From Adineta vaga (taxonomy: Eukaryota; Animalia; Rotifera), in contig CP075493.1 in the NCBI GenBank assembly GCA_021613535.1, forward strand, positions 3,100,001 through 3,164,000: DNA of 64,000 nt, written 5' to 3'. Each line of letters opens with the position of its first letter. The first letter of the stretch is position 1. Position numbers and translations under genes: made by a program. The notes beneath the pieces were generated by a model, which saw only the letters and a list, made by a program, of their open reading frames with translations, ran no database searches and was not told the DNA's origin. Shown piece by piece: positions 19-63,246 of this stretch.

Positions 19-101
19 ACGAATTACTTGCCGAAAAGGAAAAGTACAAGGGTGTCAGCGACGAACTCGACATGACATTAAACGAATTGTCGGGTTATTA
101 A
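19..101 (+). CDS. TPM: Tropomyosin, last coding exon (gene starts upstream of window)
   Basis: After acceptor ...tcgtag the exon reads (D)[26 protein letters not shown], the typical invertebrate tropomyosin C-terminus. Confidence 0.9.
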
Positions 102-649: not shown

Positions 650-3153
650 ATGAATACGAATCTTGATCAACAATTAGAGACAATCGAACGAAATAGTAAA
701 GGATGGAAAACATTAACTTTCTATGATCGATCATTGTTACAACAACTTACTACATGTTTACAATCATGTTTAACTATTATATCAGATAATACTTTTCTAA
801 ATATTGTTATTAATCGACGACCACAAGTATTCGATATGTTCGAATGTATTGCAACACATTTATTCAAACAATGGAAACATCAAAAACGTTCATTGACTAC
901 TGAACAATTGAATTTCTTAACAATTGTCGGTACATTCAATCGACGAATAGCTTTAACATTACAAAATGATAATGATGATCCTTATAGTAATGAAGATGAT
1001 AATGAACAGAAAGATAATAATCTTGAACATCAAAAACGTGTTCGTGAATTATTATTTGATAATAATGAGAATTTATTCGATATTTTAATGGAAATCTTAC
1101 CATCTATAAGTGAAAATGATGTTAATTTTATTGAAATGATTTTATCATGGTATGAATCTTATATCTTTTTTGAACATAGTTACATAGATTCAACATTAGA
1201 TGAAAAATTTCATTTATTTTATAATCAAATTATTCAATGTTTGAAATCCAAAGGATATGAACGAAGTTTACTAATATTCGATCATCATCAAATATTAATA
1301 ACAACTGTTCGTCATCGATTTTATTTAGGTATGTGTACAATGGCGATGGGTATACATGTCAATTGTGATGACAATGAATGTGAAGATGCTAAAAATCTAT
1401 TAGAATCCTATCTCTCACGTTATATTACATTTATACATCATTTTCTAATTGATAATCAATTAAATTCATTAAATAGTTTAGTTAGTATTACTGGTATCAT
1501 ATCTTATCTAGTTAATTATACATTGATTATCGATAGTGATAATAAACAACAATTATTAATGGATTTATTTTCGATTATTCTTCATGAAAAATTCTATGAA
1601 AATATCACAATTAATTGGACAACTTATGAAACGATTTTAATTGATTCAATCATATGTTATTTGATTATTTATTGTTATGATAATCGTTTAATAGTTCGTC
1701 AAATTATACGAATAGATGAGAATTATATTTCAAAACTTGAACATTTAATTAATCATGCACAAAATATTGGTAATCGTCGTATAGCAATTATGACTCAATT
1801 ATTCTTACTCATTCTAACAAGTTGTACAAAACATGAAGATTTATCTCAAAAATTTTTTCTTCTATGTTTAACATATATTCAAATGTCTTTAGATAATACC
1901 TATTCATATCATTATAATCGTATACCAATGAGTTTATTTTTTAAAAGTATTATACATATTATGAAAGATGAATCAATTCAAGATATTATTGCTAAACATT
2001 ATTTAAATTTATTAACCAATTTAATTATAAATTATCAAGAAAATCATTTACATGATAATCTTATCTATCGAGAATGTACAATGATTACATGTACGCTTTT
2101 ATGGTCATTATCATTTAATGAAACAATTCGAAAAATTTTAAAGCAATATGATGATAAATTTTTTCATATTTTACAAACAATTAATACAAATACGAATGAA
2201 ATATTCGTTAAACAAGCGACTTGTGGTTTACTTTATAATTTAGATCGATTAGATTTTGATAAAGTAAGAATAATTGATACAGTTGTTATTGAATATGTTT
2301 GTTTTTCATCTAGAATTGTTCGATAACTGATCATAATTTTGGTAAAACTATTGGTATAAGTTATGATATATCTGATCAAGAGACAGTGCAAATGATTGAA
2401 CAAGAATTAAATAAAAATGGTCATCGTGTATGGACAAATTATGATCATATGAATGATCAATTCATTCCATCGTTTATATCTCTAATGAATAGTACGGAAT
2501 ATTTAATTATTTGTCTAAGTGATATGTATCGAATGAATAATCGTTGTCGTACGGAACTTCTCTATGCGACAACATCGGGTTGTTGTGTTCTCTCGTGGAA
2601 AGTTCAAATACCAACAGAGAATTCTGAAGAAAACGAACAAATTCGTATTCGTGCAATTGAAATATTACTTAAACGTATAACACCAATTGATAAGAATACT
2701 ATTTCAAGTACAGATATTACACATGTTACAGTTCATATGGAAAAACGTTCGACACCGACAAATTTCAATCGTCGTCGACGTACAAAAGAAATTATGAATT
2801 TAGAAAATTGGACAACTACAGAAGTTTCAAGATGGTGTCAATCATTGAATATACCAGGATTTTCGAAATTAATAACAAATTTCGATGGACAAAGTGTTGT
2901 GAAATTATATGAATTTTGTAAACAGAATTCGACTGAAACTATAGCCATATTAAATAATGATTTACATCATATATGTGAACAAGAGAATATATCTGACATA
3001 CAGATATCTCTTCATGAATTCATACGTTTTCAAATTGAAGTTGAAAAAGTAATCACATCATCTGAATTAGCAAGTTCATCCCTATCATTAACATCATTAA
3101 AACCGGAGATTTACAAAAAACGATTGAAAATTCGAACATGTTCTATTCTTTAA
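650..3153 (+). CDS. ARM/helical-repeat + TIR_2 + SAM-like domain protein with C-terminal CaaX motif (2 exons; intron 2264-2313)
   Basis: Exon 1 is helical with ARM-like LLWSLSFNETIR...ATCGLLYNL. Splicing gtaaga..tag joins in frame to TIR motifs IGISY..VW..YLIICLSDMY..CRTELLYA, then SAM-like LENWTTTEVSRWC..FDGQSVVKLY, ending KKRLKIRTCSIL*. Confidence 0.8.
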
Positions 3154-3735
3154 TATCATCGTACATTGTCTATGTTTTGTTTTATAATAAATATCATTCG
3201 AGTTTGAATTGTCAAAAGTTACAAAAGAAATTCATTCTTTAGTTTTCTTTTATTCAATCAGTGAACTTTCACATACAGTAATAAAAAAAAGAACGGATGA
3301 TTTCTGCTTGTTTTTTTTAACGTCTCAGAGATGTTTTCTTTTCTCAATTGTTGACTATCATAAAGAAAAAAAAATGCTTGTGCTAGAGAATTTTCCAATG
3401 AAGAGAAAAAAACCAACAAAAAGAAATGAACACACCGGACAGAAATCAAGAATGAAGAAAAAAAAGGAAGCTGCTGAATTTTCATGTTTACTTTGTTTGG
3501 TTTTTTTTAAAATAAGAACTTAGAATGAGTTAAACAGAACAACAAGCATGATGGAGGCGGAAATCATTTGGAGAAGAAAAAGAAGAAGATAGAAGAGAAC
3601 AATGTATGCTAACAGTTGCTTTTGTTTTGTTTTGTACAGTTACACAAGAAAGAAAAAAAAGAAAAATCGATTTTAATGCATACATTGATGTATGTCAAGA
3701 ATAATATAACAAATTGTTCATCTTAGTTTTTCAAT

Positions 3736-5254
3736 TTAATCGAAACTGCTTAAAAGATAGTTAGCTGCTAATTCTTCATTGCGATCACAAGCGAGAAAAG
3801 CTTCAATGACACGATTACGTTCAAAACCCATGTCTTGTAACTAAATGTAAGAGAACAATAATCATTGGAAATGACGGGAAAGAATGACATACTCTGTTTA
3901 TTGCTTGTTGATCTTGTGGCGAAAGAGTAATTGTGACAGTGCCCGGTGGTCCATGACCGCCTGCACCTCCAGCACCAACACCACCTTGTAATGGATCATC
4001 ATCATCACCTCCATCATCACCTTCATCAGCTTGATTTAATAATTCAAGAAATTCTTGTGGTCGTTGTTCAATTAACTAAAGAAAATGAAAGTAAATGAAG
4101 ATTTTTCTTCAATTATTTCACATGAATTTACTTGATAGAGTTCTGGTTGAGTGGCTTGTAATGTTTGCATGAGTGTTTGAAGTTGTTCAGGGTTTTGTTG
4201 AATTAATTGACGAAGTGCTTGAAATTGTGGATTTTGACTTAATTCAGATAGATCATCTATGAAAATAATTTTCAATAATCAATACACTATTCGATTGAAA
4301 TCAAGTAAAAGATTATTTTTACGAAATTAACTATCTCCGAAAATCTATGCTTTACAAACAATTCTTACCGTCTCCTCCTCGTCGACCACCTGTTGAACTT
4401 TCTGAACCAGTAGGTGTTTGGCCTGATCCACCTTCTTGGCTTGCTGTTGAGCCTTCATTGAGAATAGGAATGTTACCCTAAACAGAGATGAAATATAATA
4501 GTAATAATGTACAAATCTTTTTTTCATTATATCTATTTAATCTACCGTAATTAAATATTCAGCAGCACGTTCCACATGATAGAAACTGGCACGTAATGCA
4601 AGTTCAGCTTGTGCACGATCAAAGCCCATATCGGTTAACTCACGTAAAGCTTTTTCTCGAACTTCAGCGGATAGAAATGCATCTTGGGAAGCAGCTGGAG
4701 CATTTTCACTTGATGGAGCTGGTCGTGCTGGTTGTTGTTGTGGAGGGGCTGCAGCTGGTGTTGCAACATTAGGTGTACGAGCTTGTGTACTAAATGAACA
4801 AAATGGTCACTTTTTTCTGACGAATAGTATTCATAAACAAACCCAGTAGCTCCTGAAGGATTACTTGGTGCAGCAGCGCTTGCTGTTGTCTATTGAAATG
4901 AAGAAAGAAATATTTGATTTGATTTGAAGATAATCGTTCTCTTACTGCTTGAGGTTTAGGTACTGCTTGTTTGACAACAACAAGAAAACTTTCTGGAGTG
5001 ATGGCATAAGATTCCAAAGTTTTCGCATCTTCGAGAATTTTCCCCGAAAAGATCAATTTAACTGCATCAGCCTCATATTTATCTTTGAGATCTTTTGCTG
5101 CTATCTTTTCTTTTATTGTTTTTACCTAAGAATGAAAAAAACAAAATTTCAAAGAATTAATTTTTGATTTCATTTAAATATGTCTCACCGTATCAGATAG
5201 TTCACATTCAATAGTAAATTTTTCATTTGAAAGTGTCTTTATTTGAAGTTGCAT
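3736..5254 (-). CDS. RAD23: UV excision repair protein RAD23 (UBL-UBA-STI1/XPC-binding-UBA), multi-exon
   Basis: [13 protein letters not shown] (UBL), [22 protein letters not shown]1 [44 protein letters not shown]2 [27 protein letters not shown]. Confidence 0.95.
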
Positions 5255-50710: not shown

Positions 50711-51758
50711 CACTCTAATATATATATATATTAAATTATTCAATTAGAACATCTTCAGTTAACGTGTAGTTCAGACTTACGGAATATAATCGACTGATAC
50801 CATTGTAAACTATATATTTCAGAAAAATATGATAAATTCAGGCGCCTTCTTGCATAGTCATATTTCAACTCAATTAGCCTACGTGAAATATAACATCTTT
50901 CCTTTTTTTCATCGATTTATTCAAAAGTAATGATCACACCGACGTCTATCCATTTGTTGTCTGTATCTTTTTGTCTCTCTCTCTCTTAAAGATTTTCTTT
51001 CGTGTAAATAACATTCAGAAAAAGAAAGCACATAATTGAGTGTAATAAATGAAGAGAAAAATCTTATGTGTGTATCTATGACAATGAACAGAGAAAAAAT
51101 AATGGATCGTACAAGAACATAAGGGTTTTTAAAAAGACCAAAAATGAAGAGTGTACATATATATATATTTATGTGTGAACAAGAAATTGTACAAGAATAG
51201 TAAAATATGTGCAGGCATATGTAATAGATATATTTGTAAACCAAACGAGAACTTGTTGTTGATCTCATCATCACAGAAGAAGAAGAAAAAAGAATGTCCT
51301 CACATAAGTATTTGATGAATTCGTATATACATAGAGACGAAGGAATGGGAGTAAACAACAATTAGAAGATCAAGAAAAAGTAAAGAAGGATGAACTCAAG
51401 ATGAGAACAAAAAAATAAATAAATAATATACATCAACATCACCACGTTAAACGTGATGGAAGTTGAAACTATCTATCAAAGTAATTCAAAATCGAACTCA
51501 TGGAGACGAGAAATGACCGTAGAAATAGTTCTAATCTAGAAAACATTGTTTTCTTTTTCCACAAAAGGACAATATATATATATATATATATGTGTGTATG
51601 TGTGTGTTTGTGTGTATAGATAGATTGATATATAGATATAAAGGCATCAAGAGAGAGAGAGAGAGACACGATTGACAGCAAAGAAAAAGAAACGTCACGC
51701 GGGCAAAGAAAAATGGAGTAGTAGAAAATAAACAAGCACATATACGAATATCGTCAGT

Positions 51759-54700
51759 TCATCCTTTTACTTTTTGTCCTCCAGATGAATTAAATGATCC
51801 ATTAGGTGTTCCATTTGACTCTCGACAACCATTTTGTATAGGCATTGGAGTTGCACTTTTACTTGGTGGTGATGGTTCAATCGCTGCAGTATTATTGTTA
51901 TTATCGTCTATCATTGGATAACAATCACGACAAACACGTACGGCACGAGAATTCAATGCTGGAATAATTTTATAATAATTCGCACAACTATTACAGAATA
52001 CATTGCCACATTCTGAAAAGAAAAGAAAATATTGTCTTAAATATGTATTTAATGAGGGAAAATCCTACTTCGACAATGATGTTTTCGTGAAAAAGGCCAT
52101 TGTTGAAATTTTGAATGACATGAATGACATGTATGAACATTGAAATCGGGCATCCAACGTGTCACAGTTCCTTCTGTATTATCAATTTTTTGCCATGATG
52201 CACATGACGATGTTTCAACACTATTTATATTACTTTGTGATATGGTATCCATCCTTGGTGATGTGTTCTATTAAAGAGGAAAAAAACAAATTTAATTCGA
52301 AGAAAAATGAAGAAGAAAATCAACAAACATGATTATTATTAGTAGTACTAGTATTGTTAAATTTGATCAATGTATGAACGAATTTTTGCATTCGTCGCAT
52401 ATGTTCATGAAGACTTTCGATCTGTTGGACATATGCTCGTTCTTTTTCTAACATTCGGGATGTAATTTGATCAGGAATTTTCGTTAAACCATCGACATCA
52501 ATACGTTTTCGAACAGATTTTATTGTTTTATTCGACGTTGACGATTGAGTATGGGGTATCTAGATAGAAGAAAAAGATGTATTATTCGTTTGTGATAGAA
52601 AAACAAAACAAACAATTCGTTGAGGTTGATTAGGATCTTGTGAATTGATTTTTGTTAATGACCATGCTTCAGATAAACCTGAACCTGTACTTGATGTTGA
52701 ATTTGTATGTTTTCGTGGCCGTGACATTGTTCGTAAGATATTATCAACACTGCTAACATTCAATGGAAAACGTTGGAAAGATAATGCTAATTGAGTTATA
52801 TCTGGTGCAGAATCATCTGTTGCAAAACTTTGTCGTTTCGCTTGATTATCTGGACTATCATGACCGTTTGTATTAGGTAGAGTAACAGTTGATGGTGGAG
52901 TGATATTATTTGTATTCGGTGTTGTAGGAGTTGATAAACCATTAATAGGATTATTGGTCATGTTATGATTACTACCATTGAGTGTACCAAGATGATGTGG
53001 TGGACCAAATAAACTATTTGTAGATGTAGAATTTTGTAAACGATTTGATTGATTGGAATTTGTGGATGTTGTATTGGTATTATTTGCATTTCCAGTACGA
53101 ATGGTAATCGAAGATGATTCTAGACTTGCTGAACCACTTAAACTTGGATCGGATGTTGATCGATGTAGACCAGTTGTTAATGATGTTGAAAGATCTTCAT
53201 ATGATTGTAAATGACCAGGTACTAAAGATGATGAAGATGAAGGATGTTCAGATGAACCAGCAGGTGTATAACGAGTATCACGTAGATATAAATTTGACCA
53301 TATACGTAAATCACGAACTGAATATGATGGATATAAAACCTTGGTAAAAAAAACAAACAAATAATATGCTTTGATTGACAAATATATATAGACAATCATC
53401 TTACTTCTTTTCTTGTCTCATCAAATAAATGATTAATAAATTGTGTTGATTTTATATTTAATAAACTCCAAACACTTAATGTTCGTGTCTCTAAATTGGC
53501 TGTTGTTCGTTCAAAATCTGTATTACATAAAAATGTACCATGTAAACAAGTATATGTATGTGTTGCTAATTTGAGCTAAAATAAAAAAAACAAATTCTAT
53601 TCACAAACACGAATTTTTTTTTCTACATCGTATCTTACAAGAAACATTTCATTGAATTCAAATGCAACTGGATTTTGAGTAAATAATTGATAGATACAAT
53701 CTAACCATTGAAGAAATACAGGACTTCGTTCATTAGGATCATTTGCACCAATACCATGACCGCATCGATCACCAAATTTATGTCCGAATGCAACCCATTC
53801 CCGTTGTATTAAAATTTGAAAACCTTCTATTGTTCGATAATATGAATCAAGCATAATTTCAGCTAATGTTGTTATTTGTGGTGTTCGATCCCAACCATCT
53901 GAACAATGCACAAGGACAGGTCTACTCTGTTTATCGACAGTTGCAACTACAAAAGATGCAGCACCTATTAATGCTGATAGATTATGTAACCATCTTGTCG
54001 ATTCTAATTGTGAAAGCCAACTAAACAAGAAATCGAACAATTAAAATCTTCTATATTTTCATTCATCAAACTTACTTTTCACCTTGTGCTGCATTTGCAA
54101 TAGCAACACGTAACATTTGGGCACTTTTACGAATAGCATGAATATTTGGTAGATTCATAAATTGTACATCACAATCGGTATAATACGGTGGATATTCAAA
54201 ACCACCGCCTTTGGCACGATTAGCAATTGCTGCAGCATAACTTCGTGCATCAAGAATTAATAAACGATTGGAACTATTTTCACCTAGAAAAGAAATTAAA
54301 TATGTTTTTTTTTCTTCTTTTAATTCATGTTTATTTCATTGAGTTTTACTAACGAGAAACGGAATCATTTGTTGCAATATTACAAGCATTAATGATTGCT
54401 TGGATCATTTTTTCATCTTCTTTCGAACGCCAAAATAACCAACCAATTTCAGGTTGACTTGTTCGAGCAATAACTGCACCATTACAATGTCTATTAGAAA
54501 AGAAGAAAAAACAAAAATGATCGTTACTTTCGAAAATGTTCGCATAAGAAATCTTTTCATTACCTCCAAACAATCGTAGGAAATCGCCGATAGGATCTAA
54601 ATTTTGCAACTTCACCAATTTCTTCATCAGTTATCGAAGATGGAACAACACAAAATTCCGGGTAACTAGTACACAATTTATAATTATGATTAATTTCTGT

Positions 54701-55303
54701 TAATCTCCAAGGATATGCATCCAATTGTAAACGTATTAATTCATCTTGAAAATGATCACGTAATGAACGTTCTTGATTTGGTAAAGATGAAGCAAATTTA
54801 ATTGCAAATAAATCGTCTAAACAAGTTGGAATTGAAATTGATTCAGTTAATTTTCTTAACCAATAACAACATTTTTCTGTTGTAAAAAATGTTAAACGAA
54901 ATGAACGAATATCTTTACATTGTATGAATAAATAATTATCTTTAATTTCAACTATATCAATTAAACGTATGGGACAATTAATAAATGAACAACACGATTG
55001 ATTTGTAAATATAAATAAACGATATGTTGTTAAATAAATAATTCCATCGGATAAATCTGTTCCATGTTCAATATATTCTTCTCCAGCTAGGAAATCAAAT
55101 GGTAATTCATTTAAATCAATTGAACGTTTATTCATTTTCTCAATAGGTAATTCATTGGATATAACTGGAAAGGATTGTAATGGTGATAATGTTGTACATA
55201 AGGATTCTGAAGGTTGTTCGATTGGAATACTGTTTGATACTTCACACAAATGCATATCTTCTTCTTCAACCATAGTCACCGGTGATGGAACTCCGACAAC
55301 CAT
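51759..55303 (-). CDS. MTMR3/MTMR4: Myotubularin-related phosphatase MTMR3/4 (PH-GRAM, PTP, coiled coil, FYVE), multi-exon
   Basis: GIIYLTTYRL, YKLCTSYP, FRSYRRFP, catalytic VLVHCSDGWDRTPQ, FGHKFGDR, FYVE WMPD..C..C...SRKHHCRKCGNVFC..C..VRVCRDC. Confidence 0.95.
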
Positions 55304-57240
55304 TTTGTATTCTTTAAAATAGATATGAAAGAGTTTTATTCTAGAAAATCAATTTTACATAAACATCTAAAACAAAGATTAAAAAACCCAATGAATTCAA
55401 CCTTCAAAATATAAACCATATGATCGTCTGATATGATGTTTTAATAATGAGTCACGTCTAGACAATCGTTTTGTTTTATCCTATACCGTAATATTTACAT
55501 TACATACATGTTTTTCTTTTCCTATAGATTGACATTACTTCCAAGTGTGTTTTAATCACCAATTAAAACGAAAGAAAAATTTCAATGGAAAAAATGCTTT
55601 GATAAATGATAAAAAAAAATAAACGAAATAATCATATGAAAACAAAAGTAACTTGTTTTTTGTGTCTTAAGAAGAGGTGTGAGGGGGATGGGATGGTTGG
55701 GGTTGAGAAAAAGCGTTAGATAAGTGAATCATTTGATCATTGTGTTGATTTTGTTCAACCAATCGAATAGAGGTAACTAAGATCAACAAAAGTTTTTCTA
55801 TAAAAGATTATTTTCCTATTCTCTTCGAATATTATTTGAAAATTTTACGTTAAATTATCATATGTAATTGAGTACAATCAGTGACATCTATATTTCATCG
55901 CTCAAATGATGACCAATCGTGAAGAGTGATGTAAGACAGCTGATATGGGTAATAACGAACATCGGTCAGATGTCATGGGAATGCGAAAGAATGTTCTATG
56001 CATGCGTCATAAAACAAATTTGAAACCATGGAAAAGAAACGAAATGATAAGATAACATATTGTTAAATTATCATAATAGAATCAAAACATACTAAAATTA
56101 AATGTATAAAATATGACGGTTAATGAAGTGGGAACATTTCCAATGGATATTATTTCGTTCTTTCCGATATAGACGTAATCATATACTTTAAATTTAATTA
56201 ATTTCGAGAGAAAAATACATGTGTCGATCATAAGTAATACGCGTCGTGATACAAATCTACTCTATGTGTTAGCTCATGAATAGTATCGATTTAGCACGAC
56301 TGATTCAATGATGATTCTAGCAAATCAGAAATGAAATTCGTCTAAAATAATTGACATACTTCAGACAAATGTTTTCACTAGGTTCGTATATCAATCAATG
56401 ATATGCTTTTGTCATAGTCGATTCCATTTAAATATTTTATGTCAAACCTATAGAAGTAATATGTTGATATTATTTTTGAATAACAATCACATGACATTTT
56501 AAGTAAACTTCATCTTATTTGTTGAATGATAAATCATCATAGTTTTCAGTCGTATCTCTCTATATTGACAGTTTAATATTACTTCAAAAATATTAATTCT
56601 ACCACTTTCTAATTTAATCACAAACTTATTTATTTTATCGTAGTAGTTTAATAACGAAATTGTAGTTACTAAACCTTTTCTTCTCTTTATATTTTGAATA
56701 GGATCAAAACAATCATATATTTAATTAGAAAAGAATCCATTCAAACTAAATTCTACTTATAATTCAATCAAAAATTTGATTCTCTCTCTATTACATAATC
56801 ATTTTGATTACCGCTGAGAGAATTTCTTAAACGTTTAACGCATCACATAATATTTAAAAGAGATTTTAACAAAAGAATAATCGTTTATTAAATACCATCC
56901 AAGAAATGAACTTGAAAGACAATTATTTAAACAACAAGATAAGAACATTAAGTAGTGGTATAAAAAGGCAGAGAAGGTAGTGGACGGTTCAATGAAGTAA
57001 AATAAGACGATGACATTGCCGATGAGAACAGGAAAAATTTGAACATTGGAAGCGATTTTAACTGATTCCATATGTAATTTTCATGAAACTTCATTAACGA
57101 GCAATAAAGATACATCAATATATAACTAAAAAACAATAGGAGATGACTTCATAAATATCCTATTTACAAATGTAACTGAAACGTGCAACTGTGATAAAGA
57201 CTTACTAGTAATCTTCAATATCGTCTTCATTCGAACAAAA

Positions 57241-57946
57241 TTACTTTTTACCACCTCCACCACCACCACCACCTCCGCCACCACCGCCTCCGCCAAAGCC
57301 ACCACCACCTCCGCCAAAGCTACCACCACCACCACCTGGACAACCAGGGGCACCGGGCATACCAGGGCTTCCAGAACTACCCCCTGCTCCACCATTACCG
57401 CCGGAACAACCGGAATTCAACCAATGCCACCTCCTCCACCGCCACCATTATTGCCATCGAAGAACCCGGCACCACTTCCTCTATTAAAAATAAAAGTAGG
57501 TCGAACAGGGGTACCTGAGCTACCTCCATTGCCGCCGGCACCACCAAAGCCGCCAGCTGTTCCAGGCATACCCGGGTTTCCAAAGCCACCTCCATTGCCA
57601 CCAGCACCACCAAAGCCACCAGATGTTCCAGGCATACCCGGGTTTCCAAAGCCACCTCCATTGCCACCAGCACCACCAAAGCCGCCAGATGTTCCAGGCA
57701 TACCCGGGTTTCCAAAGCCACCTCCATTGCCACCAGCACCACTAAAAATACAAAAATGAGCTTAAACATATTTCCCATCTACCACAATCTACACTTACCC
57801 AAGCTGTTGACCAGAAACCATGACTAGAAAGAAAAAATTAAACATAAAATATTTTTAAAACATTATGACGTATATTCCCTACCTTGAAACAAAAAATTTG
57901 CCATTATCATCAGCAGAAAAGTGATTCGAATGACGCTTGCCATCAT
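57241..57946 (-). CDS. Secreted glycine-rich protein A (exons 57946-57883, 57823-57799, 57741-57241; apparent 1-nt frameshift near 57419)
   Basis: Signal peptide MMASVIRITFLLMIMANFLFQ|VMVSGQQL, three GGAGGNGGGFGNPGMPGT(S/A)GGF repeats, stop after GGIG; the Gly-rich frame resumes shifted by one base and ends GGGKK*. Confidence 0.75.
57522..57741 (-). repeat. 66-bp coding tandem repeat (~3.3 copies)
   Basis: ccaggcatacccgggtttccaaagccacctccattgcc recurs at 57562, 57628 and 57694. Confidence 0.9.
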
Positions 57947-59104
57947 TTAATGCTTCACACCACTAATTTAAATAGTTGATGATTGCTGCACGTATTTAAA
58001 CGATAAGATCAATGAATCACCAATTATTTAATTACACTTCTCACCAACAATATTGTTTCGTACCAGTGAACAAACTGTGAACGATATCACGAAAAAGTGG
58101 AAAACCATCTGCTTTTATACAACTCTATACACCCACTCAAACACAGACATACAAAGGAATAGAGAGAGAGAGCGAAAGAGATGCACTCTTATCGAAATAT
58201 TCCGATCGGATAACAAAATATTCACATACAAAGAACGAAAGAAAATCATAAGCGTACAAACTGAACAGTTTTTCTTCACAATATTCATCGCCATAAATGT
58301 GTCAACAATCTTTCCAAAAATCCCATTTTTATATCTCGCACTCGCTCACTAACAAGATCTTGAGTTAATCGATAATTAAAATGCTTTTCTCTCGATATTT
58401 ATCAACATGTTTCGCCACTCATTGTCGATCTCTCGCAATTTGTTCACCTATCATCTATGTCAAAGTACAGACAATCATTCCATTCATCAGTTCAACATCA
58501 TCAACATTCTATTGCTTTTGAGATTGTTTTGTTCATCAGCAATTAATCGGTACTATATTTCGAAGTCGATCTTTCCTAGCATGCATAGAAATACGATCAG
58601 CATCTGGATCAAATCAACATTTCTCCAGGCTTCACATTCGTTAACAGTGCACATTTCGAACGATAGAGATCATCATCGTATTCACGATTATCTACGCGTG
58701 CATTTCTTTGTCACACGTGATTTTTCGACTGATGTATTTCCATGAATGATTTATTTTATTATCAGTACTTGCCGTATCTATCATCGCCCTATGATGTGCC
58801 AATGTCCACCGATTCGATGGACGTTTCACTCTCCCTTCCTCTCCTCCTGTTCTTTCTAGATTTTCTGCATTCTTCATTTTGTTTTACATTTTGAATGGTC
58901 AATTTGTTCGTGCAAAGTTCGATTCTCTTTCTCTTAGTTGTAAATACCGACGAAGAAAAGACATGATTTTTCTCTATCTCTCTCTTTCCTATTAATTGTT
59001 TTGACCTCGATATCTCTGTATGAGTCATGAATTCCCGTTATTTTTCCCTTTTCTTCTCTCTCTCTCTCTCTCTCTCTCTCGGATTTCTCTCCTTTGTGTT
59101 CACG

Positions 59105-59113
59105 TATATAAAA
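59105..59113 (+). promoter_or_regulatory. Candidate TATA box for peptide gene B (mirror copy near 61509-61517)
   Basis: tatataaaa about 120 nt upstream of ATG 59227, retained in both arms. Confidence 0.45.
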
Positions 59114-59226
59114 ACCCGTACTATTCTGCATTCGGATCATACGATACAATCCAATCGATCTTTCTCGTTTATTCAACCTCAATACATTAGTCAATTATCC
59201 TTCTCGTTTATCATCCAAACGTCACA

Positions 59227-59529
59227 ATGATACCCACTTTCTCTCGCTTTCTCTACTTGCTTGTTCTTGCATTATTGATCGTCTCGCAAGGTATGTTCGC
59301 ATAGTTTTCTTCATGTTCCACAATTTCTATGGATTGATTGTTTTTTTGTGTTTTAGTCATGGTACAAGCTGGAGTTACATCGTAAGTAGAATAACGATTT
59401 TTGGTCGAAGATTCACACCACTAACTCATGTCTCTGTGTTTTAGGGCTCGTGCTAAGCGTGGTGGCGGTGGTGGTGGTGGCGGAGGCGGTTGGGGCGGTG
59501 GCGGTGGTGGAGGTGGTGGTGGCAAGTGA
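59227..59529 (+). CDS. Secreted polyglycine prepropeptide B, 57 aa (exons 59227-59290, 59357-59381, 59445-59529)
   Basis: MIPTFSRFLYLLVLALLIVSQ|VMVQAGVTS|ARAKR-G10-W-G10-K*; canonical gtatgt/ttttag and gtaagt/ttttag introns; AATAAA run at ~59733-59750. Confidence 0.85.
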
Positions 59530-60852
59530 TGAAACAATTAGATGGAGACGATGTGTGAGGTGCGAGTTCGAACTACAAGCAAAATTCCAACATACATGGT
59601 CAATGTAATTATGTGCGACTGCAAACATCAAAACCTTTCATTCATGATCAACATCGTCTCCACTCATCTCATTTACATCTACACTCGCTGTAATGTTGTG
59701 TCGTGTAGTCAATTCGAGTCTTTTTCTTACTCAATAAATAAATAAATAAATAATTGTCATCATCACATATAAATACGTTTCTCCTGATTTTCGAATGAAT
59801 GCTAATTGAATCGTGTTGCTTGAACATGAAATAGAAGAATAGGATTGATTTCAGTGTACGTTACTTTTCTTATAGTGTATGCAGCATTAGACGATCAGAG
59901 GTAAACTGACAAACATCGAAGCCATTGAAAGAAATTTTGTTGGTATGTTTCATGTGCATGATGTATCAAACTCGGTTGCAAAATGGAATTCATAGAATGT
60001 TGACACGAATGTACTTTGAGAGTTGAAAGAGATGAAGTAAGAGAGATCGAAATGTATCAAATGTACAAAGCAAAAGTAGAATATGAAAGAGATGTCAGTA
60101 TACCTAGATCACTATGGCATATATGAACAATCACTATCAGTTGGCACATTGTGTTTTCGTACATTTATTATGTCTTGTCAAATTGATTGCCATTGAACAA
60201 CGAGAACTAAGTAACAAGTGAAGTTCGTGAAATGTTGTAAACATGAGGAATGAACTACAATTCAGTTGCATTTGACTTTTCTCAATCAACATTCGATGAC
60301 AACTGAATCGAACCGTTGTGGATAAGAATCAGAGTAAATGCGACAGATAAATTTCATTGTGTTTGTATGAGCAGTGAACAAATGGAATCAAATAAAGGTA
60401 TAAGAAAGAAAAAAGCAGAAATAGTTTGAATAAGATTCGTACGTTCCAAAGTATAAAACACATGTTCGTTTCCGCTTCTCGTAAGATTATTGGAACCAAC
60501 CGTTGAAAAGGAAGTAAAATATATTGTTTATTATTCAAACCAAGTGAAAAACAATTTCAAGTGTGATATTTTCATGGATTGTTATTTACATTTGGAAAAA
60601 AAAGTGTGTTTAAATTCCAATAAATGAAAATGGAGGAGAAGTAAGCTAACAACAATGTAAACAGTATTGATTGTACAACGAGCATTGCATCTAATAATCT
60701 GAAAAAGAAGTACAGAGCGACTAAGTCTGTCATTTGCTCGAGAGTGACATAATAACTACATCTTTTTGTAAACATACGAGCAGAACATCTTTCATCAGAT
60801 TATTCTGTGTTTTCGTCGACTTTCTTTTCTTTGCAAAATAGAAGAACTACTC

Positions 60853-62580
60853 TTATATATGATGAGGACAATTATTTGTTTATTTATTGAGTAAGAAAAA
60901 GACTCGAATTGACTACACGACACAACATTACAGCGAGTGTAGAAGTAAATGAGATGATTGGAGACGATGTTGATCATGAATGAAAGGTTTTGATGTTTGC
61001 ATTCGCACATAATTACATTGACCATGTATGTTGGAATTTTGCTTGTAGTTTGAACTCGCACCTCATACATCGTCTCCATCTAATTGTTTCATCACTTGCC
61101 ACCACCACCTCCACCACCGCCACCGCCCCAACCGCCTCCGCCACCGCCACCACCACCGCCACGCTTAGCACGAGCCCTAAAACACAGAGACATGAGTTAG
61201 TGATGTGAATCTACGACCAAAAATCGTTATTCTACTTACGATGTAACTCCAGCTTGTACCATGACTAAAACAGAAAAAAACAATCATTCAATAGAAATTG
61301 TGGAACATGAAGAAAAACTATGCGAACATACCTTGCGAGATGATCAATAATGCTAGAACAAGCAAGTAGAGAAAGCGAGAGAAAGTGGGTATCATTGTGA
61401 CGTTTGGATGATAAACGAGAAGGATAATTGACTAATGTATTGAGGTTGAATAAACGAGAAAGATCGATTGGATTGTATCGTATGATCCGAATGCAGAATA
61501 GCACGGGTTTTTATATACGTGAACACAAAGGAGAGAAATCCGAGAGAGAGAGAGAGAAGAAAAGGGAGAAATAACGGGAATTCATGACTCATACAGAGAT
61601 ATCGAGGTCAAAACAATTAATAGGAAAGAGAGAGATAGAGAAAAATCATGTCTTTTCTTCGTCGGTATTTACAACTAAAAGAAAGAGAATCGAACTTTGC
61701 ACGAACAAATTGACCATTCAAAATGTAAAACAAAATGAAGAGTGCAGAAAATCTAGAAAGAACAGGAGGAGAGGAAGGGAGATTGAAACGTCCATCGAAT
61801 CGGTGGACATTGGCACATCATAGGCCGATGATAGATGTGGGAAGTGCTGATAATAAAATAAATCATCCATGGAAATATATCAGTCGAAAAATCACGTGTG
61901 ACAAAGAGATGCACGCGTAGATAATCGTGAATACGATGATGATCTTCATCGTTCGAAATGTGCACTGTTAACTAGTGTGAAGCCTGGAGAAATGTTGATT
62001 TGATCCAGATGCTGATCGTATTTCTATGCATGCTAGGAAAGATCGACTTCGAAATATAGTACCGATTAATTGCTGATGAACAAAACAATCTCAAAAGCAA
62101 TAGAATGTTGATGATGTTGAACTGATGAATGGAATGATTGTCTGTACTTTGACATAGATGATAGGTGAACAAATTGCGAGAGATCGACAATGAGTGGCGA
62201 AACATGTTGATAAATATCGAGAGAAAAGCATTTTAATAACTGATTAACTTAAGATCTTGTTAGTGAGCGAGTGTAAGATATAAAAGTGGGATTTTTGGAA
62301 AGATTATTGTCATATAGATGACGATGATATTGTGAAGAAAAACTGTTCAGTTTGTACGCTTATGATTTTCTTTCGTTCTTTGTATGTGAATATTTTGTTA
62401 TCCGATCGGAATATTTCGATAAGAATGCGTCTCTTTCTCTCTCTTTCTCTCTTCCTTTATATATCTATATATATATTTCTGTGTTTGAGTGGGTGTATAA
62501 AGCTGTATAAAAGCAGATGCTTTTCCACCTTTTCATCATATCGTTCACAGTTTGTTCACTGGTACGAAACAATATTGTTG
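60853..62580 (-). repeat. Right arm of large inverted repeat (~1.73 kb)
   Basis: Reverse complement of 58045-59772; unique spacer 59773-60852. Confidence 0.95.
61092..61395 (-). CDS. Secreted polyglycine prepropeptide B', 57 aa (exons 61395-61332, 61264-61240, 61176-61092)
   Basis: Mirror copy of B: MIPTFSRFLYLLVLALLIISQ|VMVQAGVTS|ARAKR-G10-W-G10-K*; one V/I change and four synonymous changes. Confidence 0.85.
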
Positions 62581-62597
62581 ATCCATCTATCTTATCG

Positions 62598-62605
62598 TAT
62601 AAATA
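62598..62605 (+). promoter_or_regulatory. Candidate TATA box for gene C
   Basis: cttatcgTATAAATAagtgc about 50 nt upstream of ATG 62652; homologous cttatcgTTTAAATAcgtgc lies upstream of gene A on the minus strand (~57990-58008). Confidence 0.5.
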
Positions 62606-62651
62606 AGTGCTGTGATCGTCAACTCGTTGAATCAACTGTGCGAAGAATCAA

Positions 62652-63246
62652 ATGATGGCAAGCTTCATTCGAACCACTTTTCTGTTCGTGATGATTTTAG
62701 CAGTTTTTTATGAAGGTTTGAAAATTTTTTAGAGAAAAATAAAGCATTTTGTATGGAGTTTGTTTCATTTCAGTTATGCTAGTCACACAGGGTGCTGAGT
62801 AAGTATTTAAAATGTAAGGAGTGTATTTTATTGTTTGTTTTATTTCAAGATTTGGTGATAGACCGAGTGTTGCGACGGCTATAAATATGAATATTTCTGC
62901 GATCGAAGAAAGTATGATTCGTGAAAATGGTACTGCTGCTCCGCGTAGTGTTCGTGGTATGGATGGTGAGAAAGGTGGTGATGGGGTGGGTGGAAAGGGT
63001 GGAAAAGGTGGAGACTCTCAAGGCGGTGGAGGTGGAGGCCCTCAAGGCGGTGGAGGTGGAGGCCCTCAAGGCGGTGGAGGTGGAGGCCCTCAAGGCGGTG
63101 GAGGTGGAGGCCCTCAGGGCGGTGGAGGTGGAGGACCTCAAGGCGGTGGAGGTGGTAGTGGTGACAAGGGTGGCGGAGGTGGTAGTGGTGGCAAGGGTGG
63201 CGGTGGCGGCGGCGGAAGTGGTGGTGGTGGCGGTGGTGGAAAGTAA
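62652..63246 (+). CDS. Secreted glycine-rich preproprotein C (exons 62652-62715, 62774-62798, 62850-63246)
   Basis: Signal peptide MMASFIRTTFLFVMILAVFYE|VMLVTQGA, pro-region ending RSVR, then GMDGEKGGDG..(GGGGGGPQ)x5..GGGGGGK*. Confidence 0.85.
63018..63155 (+). repeat. 24-bp coding tandem repeat (QGGGGGGP) x5-6
   Basis: caaggcggtggaggtggaggccct repeated in tandem. Confidence 0.9.

Follow-up and report, generated by a model that had tools for sequence, protein, structure and literature searches.

Snow-flea-type polyglycine II antifreeze proteins are built of Gly-X-X repeats, which form a bundle of about six polyglycine II (PGII) helices, and these proteins have ~80 residues or more. The Glycine Rich Secreted Peptides of nematodes (NLP-27..34 and the CNC caenacins) are a recognised group of antimicrobial peptides (PMC10414684), and antibacterial activity has been reported for leptoglycin (22 residues, having a G9 run) as well as for snail mucus peptides having a G8 run (PMC7554965). 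Synthetic molecules of the type Gly_n-X-Gly_n, in which the core is hydrophobic, assemble by themselves into polyglycine II sheets once n reaches 4 (PMC4077438; PMC9716523), and the use of such sheets for LPS capture has been reported (PMC8709477). Precursors of amidated-type neuropeptides are known from rotifers (PMC10730642).

The gene described here, referred to as the GWG gene, is located in a 64,000-nucleotide stretch of Adineta vaga DNA (the window, being the whole stretch that was analysed; positions without a contig name refer to it). The short introns, and the Rotaria proteins among the relatives found, agree with a bdelloid rotifer. This rotifer gene is real, has three exons, is transcribed and is correctly spliced. 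Its translation has a layout in which a signal peptide is followed by a short pro-piece, the RAKR sequence, G10-W-G10-K and the stop codon.

Structure and transcription of the three-exon gene

In copy A of the gene, which is on the + strand, exon 1 (59227..59290) has 64 nt and ends in phase 1; its translation over 59227-59289 is a 21-residue hydrophobic leader that begins with Met. Intron 1 (59291..59356, 66 nt) and intron 2 (59382..59444, 63 nt) both have GT..AG borders, and the exon 2 between them (59357..59381, 25 nt) codes for the last residues of the signal peptide and the first ones of the pro-piece. Exon 3 (59445..59529), being in frame from 59446, codes for (S)ARAKR, G10, W, G10 and K, after which there is the stop codon. 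When the three exons are joined by script from the window, a frame of 57 codons is obtained. The signal peptide feature, as read from the sequence, consists of the exon 1 leader with its hydrophobic core, followed by a V-Q-A site. The convertase-type site RAKR is found in all three copies of the gene, and the copy A precursor ends with Gly-Lys. The mature part contains a single Trp, neither Tyr nor Phe, and no repeated GGY/GGW units. Its Gly codons are a mixture of GGT, GGC and GGA, not a pure slippage run, and the Trp codon (TGG) is one substitution away from the Gly codon GGG.

Read contigs from four runs were aligned to the 1501 bases of the region 58700-60200; these runs consist of assembled contigs, which show presence and carry no expression level or condition. 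The contigs of runs X8 (2013) and X9 (2023), coming from separate studies, lack intron 1, jumping over 59291-59356 exactly at the GT..AG borders (with the joint at 59290/59357), and they cover exon 2, after which at 59382 they continue, as loose ends, into the opening bases of exon 3. In its length, the X8 contig can accommodate the entire coding sequence. Since the whole-genome DNA search finds no intronless copy, these spliced contigs must derive from cDNA, the RNA nature of the runs being otherwise only a guess, and because both of the predicted junctions are used in such cDNA-type contigs, the gene model cannot be put down to a chance open reading frame. The X9 contig has zero differences from copy A. 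Four differences from copy A are seen in the X8 contig, including a copy-C-specific C>A at 59225; one spliced contig thus matches copy A and one matches copy C, so that at least two copies are transcribed. All four run "organisms" are at least 95% identical, and therefore none of them is a divergent orthologue. The initial annotation had proposed a three-exon gene for a 57-residue protein with RAKR and G10-W-G10-K, and this is confirmed by the exon joining, the translation and the spliced contigs. It had also named splicing in another frame, or a lack of expression, as observations that would speak against it; the contigs show transcription, and splicing in the predicted frame.

Contig starts of the cDNA type are seen at 59154 and 59165. 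A TATA-like box, TATATAAAAA (59105..59114, + strand), is located ~40-50 nt 5' of the first transcribed bases seen and may function as a promoter element; there is also a (CT)n run upstream of copy A, at ~59050-59081. The 5' contig ends give no indication of trans-splicing: no AG precedes 59154, and the nine loose letters do not resemble the bdelloid spliced leader. The 3'UTR of copy A (59530..59765, + strand) has AATAAA at 59733-59738, and its region is covered over 59526-59718 by contigs of X1, X7 and X8.

Paralogous copies within a cluster of glycine-rich genes

The search of the genome (100.8 Mb in six contigs, ~30% GC) finds three copies, all of them with introns: copy A (C1:3159227, + strand), copy B (C1:3161395, - strand, being 61092..61395 of the window, with exon 1 at 61332-61395, exon 2 at 61240-61264 and exon 3 at 61092-61176) and copy C (C1:3169695, + strand), which is 5.7 kb beyond the end of the window. 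The mature part of copy B (reverse strand, 61092-61175) is identical to that of copy A, and the two coding sequences differ at Leu14 (CTT/CTA), at residue 19 (Val19Ile) and at Gly36, Gly37 and Gly40 (GGT/GGC in each case). This matches exactly the earlier description of three synonymous Gly changes, one synonymous Leu change and one V/I change in the leader. Copy C has an extra GGT after the Trp codon, and its sequence is G10-W-G11-K. The statement that the Gly counts are unchanged is therefore correct for A and B and incorrect for copy C, and the idea of a fixed, symmetric 10/1/10 design is contradicted, because copy C has the 10/1/11 arrangement. If the products were amidated, two of the genes would yield G10-W-G9 and the third gene would yield G10-W-G10. 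The precursor length is 57-58 residues across the three copies, and in none of them has the frame, a splice site, the RAKR sequence or the Trp been lost.

The copies are part of a cluster in which seven genes of a common exon plan lie within ~13 kb; they are arranged in pairs, head to head, as N1(-)/A(+), B(-)/N2(+) and N3(-)/C(+), with one further gene at 65980. Copies A and B are within an inverted duplication of the tail-to-tail type, whose arms measure ~1.9 kb (57881..59749, which includes the shared head-to-head promoter region, and 60872..62717, which pairs with it); these arms are 93-99% complementary, dropping to 75% in the outermost segment. The neighbour N1 (57241..57946, - strand) is a larger secreted Gly-rich paralogue with a 64-nt exon 1, a 25-nt exon 2, three ~60-nt repeats reading GGAGGNGGGFGNPGMPGTSGGFGG and the end GKK. 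The neighbour N2 (62653..63246, + strand), also a secreted Gly-rich paralogue, has five GGGGGGPQ units and the end GK, and a further larger secreted Gly-rich paralogue is found at L020, ~1980-4436. Exon 1 is a 64-nt, phase-1 exon with a terminal Gln (Glu in N2) in all cluster members. Exon 2 of A, B, C, N1 and N2 has 25-26 nt, and in the GWG copies and N1 it starts with (V)MV; these five genes have a Gly-rich last part with a GK or GKK terminus. The Gly-rich parts of the larger paralogues cannot be aligned despite the common first two exons, and the larger members are without an RxKR directly preceding the Gly-rich part. The GWG gene is the smallest member of the cluster.

Searches with the leader exons find the cluster genes nowhere in the genome but in this cluster; poly-Gly tracts as such are common in the A. 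vaga genome. Pfam gives zero matches for the exons or the neighbours, and Rfam gives none for the 64-kb window. The searches for relatives were run exon by exon, and none was found outside the A. vaga genome, these queries being short and of low complexity, so that such blanks do not show absence. The same reading applies to the exhaustive HMMER search with the 30-residue exon 3 piece, which gives 0 matches. In the ESM Atlas merely unnamed short clusters are obtained, with scores at chance level, and the genomic ORFs of 33 and 34 residues have no exact match in the collection. N2 as an orthologue query retrieves low-complexity bacterial matches and nothing else. A metagenome scan for G6-W-G6 codons gives at least 120 loci, which are essentially poly-G homopolymer runs; one AT-rich locus (L081) proved to be a poly-G run inside an intron.

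The cluster adjoins a myotubularin-like phosphatase gene (51166-55321, - strand), whose ohnologue is at C4:11159032 (69% amino acid identity). The corresponding side of the ohnologous region (C4:11126001-11156000, 30 kb) has neither a Gly-rich gene nor a leader exon. In the bdelloid contigs L147 (77% DNA identity) and L144, a ZNFX1-like helicase gene is present at the syntenic place of the cluster, directly upstream of myotubularin; the contig of the closest relative, L145, stops before reaching this site. As far as these comparisons extend, the Gly-rich cluster appears to be young and lineage-restricted. The contig L144 (ENA ERZ26165376, 20.9 kb), with 69-75% DNA identity across the myotubularin gene, has ~50% GC throughout, compared with 30-32% in the A. 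vaga genome, L145 and L147.

Divergence between the copies and rival explanations

The divergence between A and B is 2.9% in the coding parts (5/174) and 3.6% in the introns, UTR and upstream region (52/1461), and the copies in general differ by 3-5% throughout, coding and non-coding alike. Because the coding divergence is about the same as that of the flanks, the copies are simply young. When the mutation spectrum of the non-coding parts is used as the reference, an excess of synonymous changes is seen in the three copies (5/6 of the substitutions in the coding sequence, P 0.008-0.011) and between A and B alone (4/5, P 0.024-0.031), these values being based on few substitutions, of which the GGT/GGC swaps within the repetitive tract may be non-independent events. 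An open frame of 67 codons in the 3'UTR (59542-59745, + strand), beginning 13 nt past the stop codon of copy A, is rejected as a second coding frame: with respect to B and C, 5/5 substitutions are non-synonymous, and its stop codon is lost in B and C. Fisher's exact test for the comparison of the two frames (synonymous to non-synonymous, 4:1 in the coding sequence and 0:6 in the 3'UTR frame) gives ~0.015 by hand calculation. These numbers lend weak support to the view that selection acts on the predicted protein frame. The selection on the protein that was suggested earlier is in agreement with the synonymous excess and not with the coding divergence, which is no lower than that of the introns and flanks. 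Between B and C the exons and introns are identical except for the additional codon and a single synonymous difference, whereas the upstream 1.1 kb (58100-59226 compared with L020:4560-5694) differs by 4.9%. This pattern suggests gene conversion that did not extend beyond the transcribed part, or a staggered duplication.

It is conceivable, though rather doubtful, that the GWG gene is a young and effectively neutral by-product, being a truncated or slippage-shaped duplicate of the cluster that is transcribed via a co-copied bidirectional promoter and yields a functionless peptide. The uniform 3-5% divergence of coding and non-coding parts, the variable Gly number, the signs of gene conversion between B and C, the missing counterpart in the ohnologous region and at the syntenic site of the relative, and the abundance of poly-Gly tracts in the genome would all be expected from such an origin. 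However, the synonymous excess is seen in the coding frame and is absent from the 3'UTR open frame, 3/3 copies retain the reading frame together with the two splice sites, RAKR and Trp, at least two copies are transcribed, and the GGT/GGC/GGA mixture differs from a pure slippage run. Should there be no such peptide, the locus would amount to no more than an expressed and short-lived branch of a family of low-complexity genes.

An unlikely function is that of a soluble host-defence peptide (antimicrobial or antifungal), of the invertebrate glycine-rich type, that targets microbial envelopes. The signal peptide, the composition of Gly plus an aromatic residue, the Gly-basic C-terminal end, the location in a fast-duplicating local cluster and the antimicrobial nematode, leptoglycin and snail mucus peptides mentioned above point in this direction; the single aromatic residue, the absence of Leu and of a repeated YGG/GGW motif, the near lack of charge and the lack of amphipathicity do not, and no homology is detectable with these short, low-complexity queries. 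The proposal that the product works via a receptor, as an amidated neuropeptide or hormone of the classical kind, agrees with the prohormone-like order of leader, dibasic site and terminal Gly-Lys and with the rotifer precursors already known, but it is most improbable when considering that no conservation is seen and the length varies, that there are almost no side chains for recognition and that the family consists of large Gly-rich secreted proteins. The explanation that is tentatively preferred over these three, while still falling short of being probable, is that a convertase-processed oligoglycine peptide undergoes extracellular self-association, or co-association, of the polyglycine II type. 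It is favoured because the family consists of large secreted Gly-rich proteins, because the peptide is without charge or amphipathicity and because synthetic Gly_n-X-Gly_n molecules with an n of 4 or more assemble into polyglycine II sheets. The predicted arm before the Trp has 10 Gly, and the arm after it has 10-11 in the precursor and 9-10 if amidated, such that both arms exceed the threshold of at least 4 Gly of the synthetic molecules (PMC4077438). Points against self-association are the varying Gly count of the paralogues, the single substitution that separates the Trp codon from a Gly codon, a coding divergence that is not below the non-coding one, the blank searches for relatives outside the A. 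vaga genome, the missing cluster in the ohnologous region and at the syntenic place in a relative, the lack of an identified PHM gene, and the one free N-terminus of a linear peptide compared with two in the synthetic molecules.

Predicted processing and comparison with known systems

For the self-associating peptide, the predicted precursor would enter the secretory pathway, where signal peptidase would remove ~27 residues and a proprotein convertase would cleave after RAKR; a carboxypeptidase would subsequently take off the terminal Lys. The product would be an oligoglycine of 21-22 residues with one central Trp, perhaps amidated. Outside the cell it could serve as a coating, an adhesive or a matrix component, perhaps with a microbe-trapping function, and not as a receptor ligand. 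Amidation of the C-terminus is an assumption made from the Gly-Lys end. The genome has eleven matches to the convertase P-domain (PF01483) and many to PF01082. The two best copper type II monooxygenase loci (G000:C6:4738391-4739242 and C2:12935858-12937171) resemble dopamine beta-hydroxylase much more closely than PHM, and ~10 further PF01082 loci, of greater divergence and with several exons, are found at various places in the genome; no PHM gene is identified among the PF01082 loci, the shorter exon matches not being assignable.

A similar layout is seen in an unrelated single-copy ORF (L004:1398-1670, being G000:C5:8924954-8925226, + strand), in which a 19-residue hydrophobic leader is followed by SDRIKR, Gln, 36 uninterrupted Gly (mostly GGC) and IGSGSGSGGG. 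The search finds no relatives of this ORF, and the genome contains no paralogue of it. The ORF may encode another secreted precursor of a polyglycine that is released at a dibasic site.

The literature searches turned up no homopolymer-like peptide that is released from a prohormone-type precursor. The processed GWG peptide, if it is made, would be a secreted product of the classical prohormone route with hardly any side chains and a natural counterpart of the synthetic oligoglycine nanosheets, and it would provide a handle on the role of Gly-rich secreted genes in a desiccation-tolerant, pathogen-exposed rotifer. In a more specific form, for which the chance appears small, the peptide would be a natural "tectomer", i.e. 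an encoded, convertase-released oligoglycine forming extracellular polyglycine II sheets in which the central Trp is the hydrophobic seam; such sheets could be a desiccation-proof coating or adhesive, or an LPS- or microbe-binding sheet. More remote is the variant in which the free N-terminal oligoglycine would be a decoy nucleophile for Gram-positive sortases. The cluster itself appears to show how young secreted genes arise via duplication of head-to-head pairs, inversion and gene conversion.

Compared with the described systems, the mature part, with its 21-22 residues and without Gly-X-X periodicity, does not resemble the snow-flea-type antifreeze proteins. The leader, the RxKR site and the Gly-Lys before the stop codon are shared with the precursors of amidated prohormones, which are processed by PC, carboxypeptidase and PAM; unlike for these prohormones, neither a conserved bioactive core nor orthologues are found for the rotifer precursor with the short, low-complexity queries, and the PHM gene is not identified. 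The predicted peptide and the tectomers, being synthetic biantennary oligoglycines, both have two oligoglycine arms about a hydrophobic centre; however, in the tectomers the core is an alkyl diamine and both arms have free amines, whereas the rotifer peptide runs from N to C through the Trp and has one free N-terminus.

Leptoglycin and the snail mucus peptides are natural, secreted, ~20-26 residues long and near-neutral, with uninterrupted G8-G9 runs (PMC7554965), and the rotifer peptide would be alike in these respects. Their flanks are hydrophobic and rich in Leu/Val, whereas the rotifer peptide is 95% Gly and has its sole hydrophobic residue in the centre. As for the nematode Glycine Rich Secreted Peptides, these and the rotifer gene are both short secreted Gly-rich precursors with aromatic residues, in rapidly duplicating clusters of tiny-exon paralogues. 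The nematode peptides, from another phylum and without demonstrable sequence homology, have many Tyr/Trp in repeated GGY/GGW units, whereas the rotifer peptide has one Trp in 21-22 residues. Judging from its sequence, the GWG gene would be an odd, extreme form, young and species-restricted, of the secreted glycine-rich peptide precursors of invertebrates.
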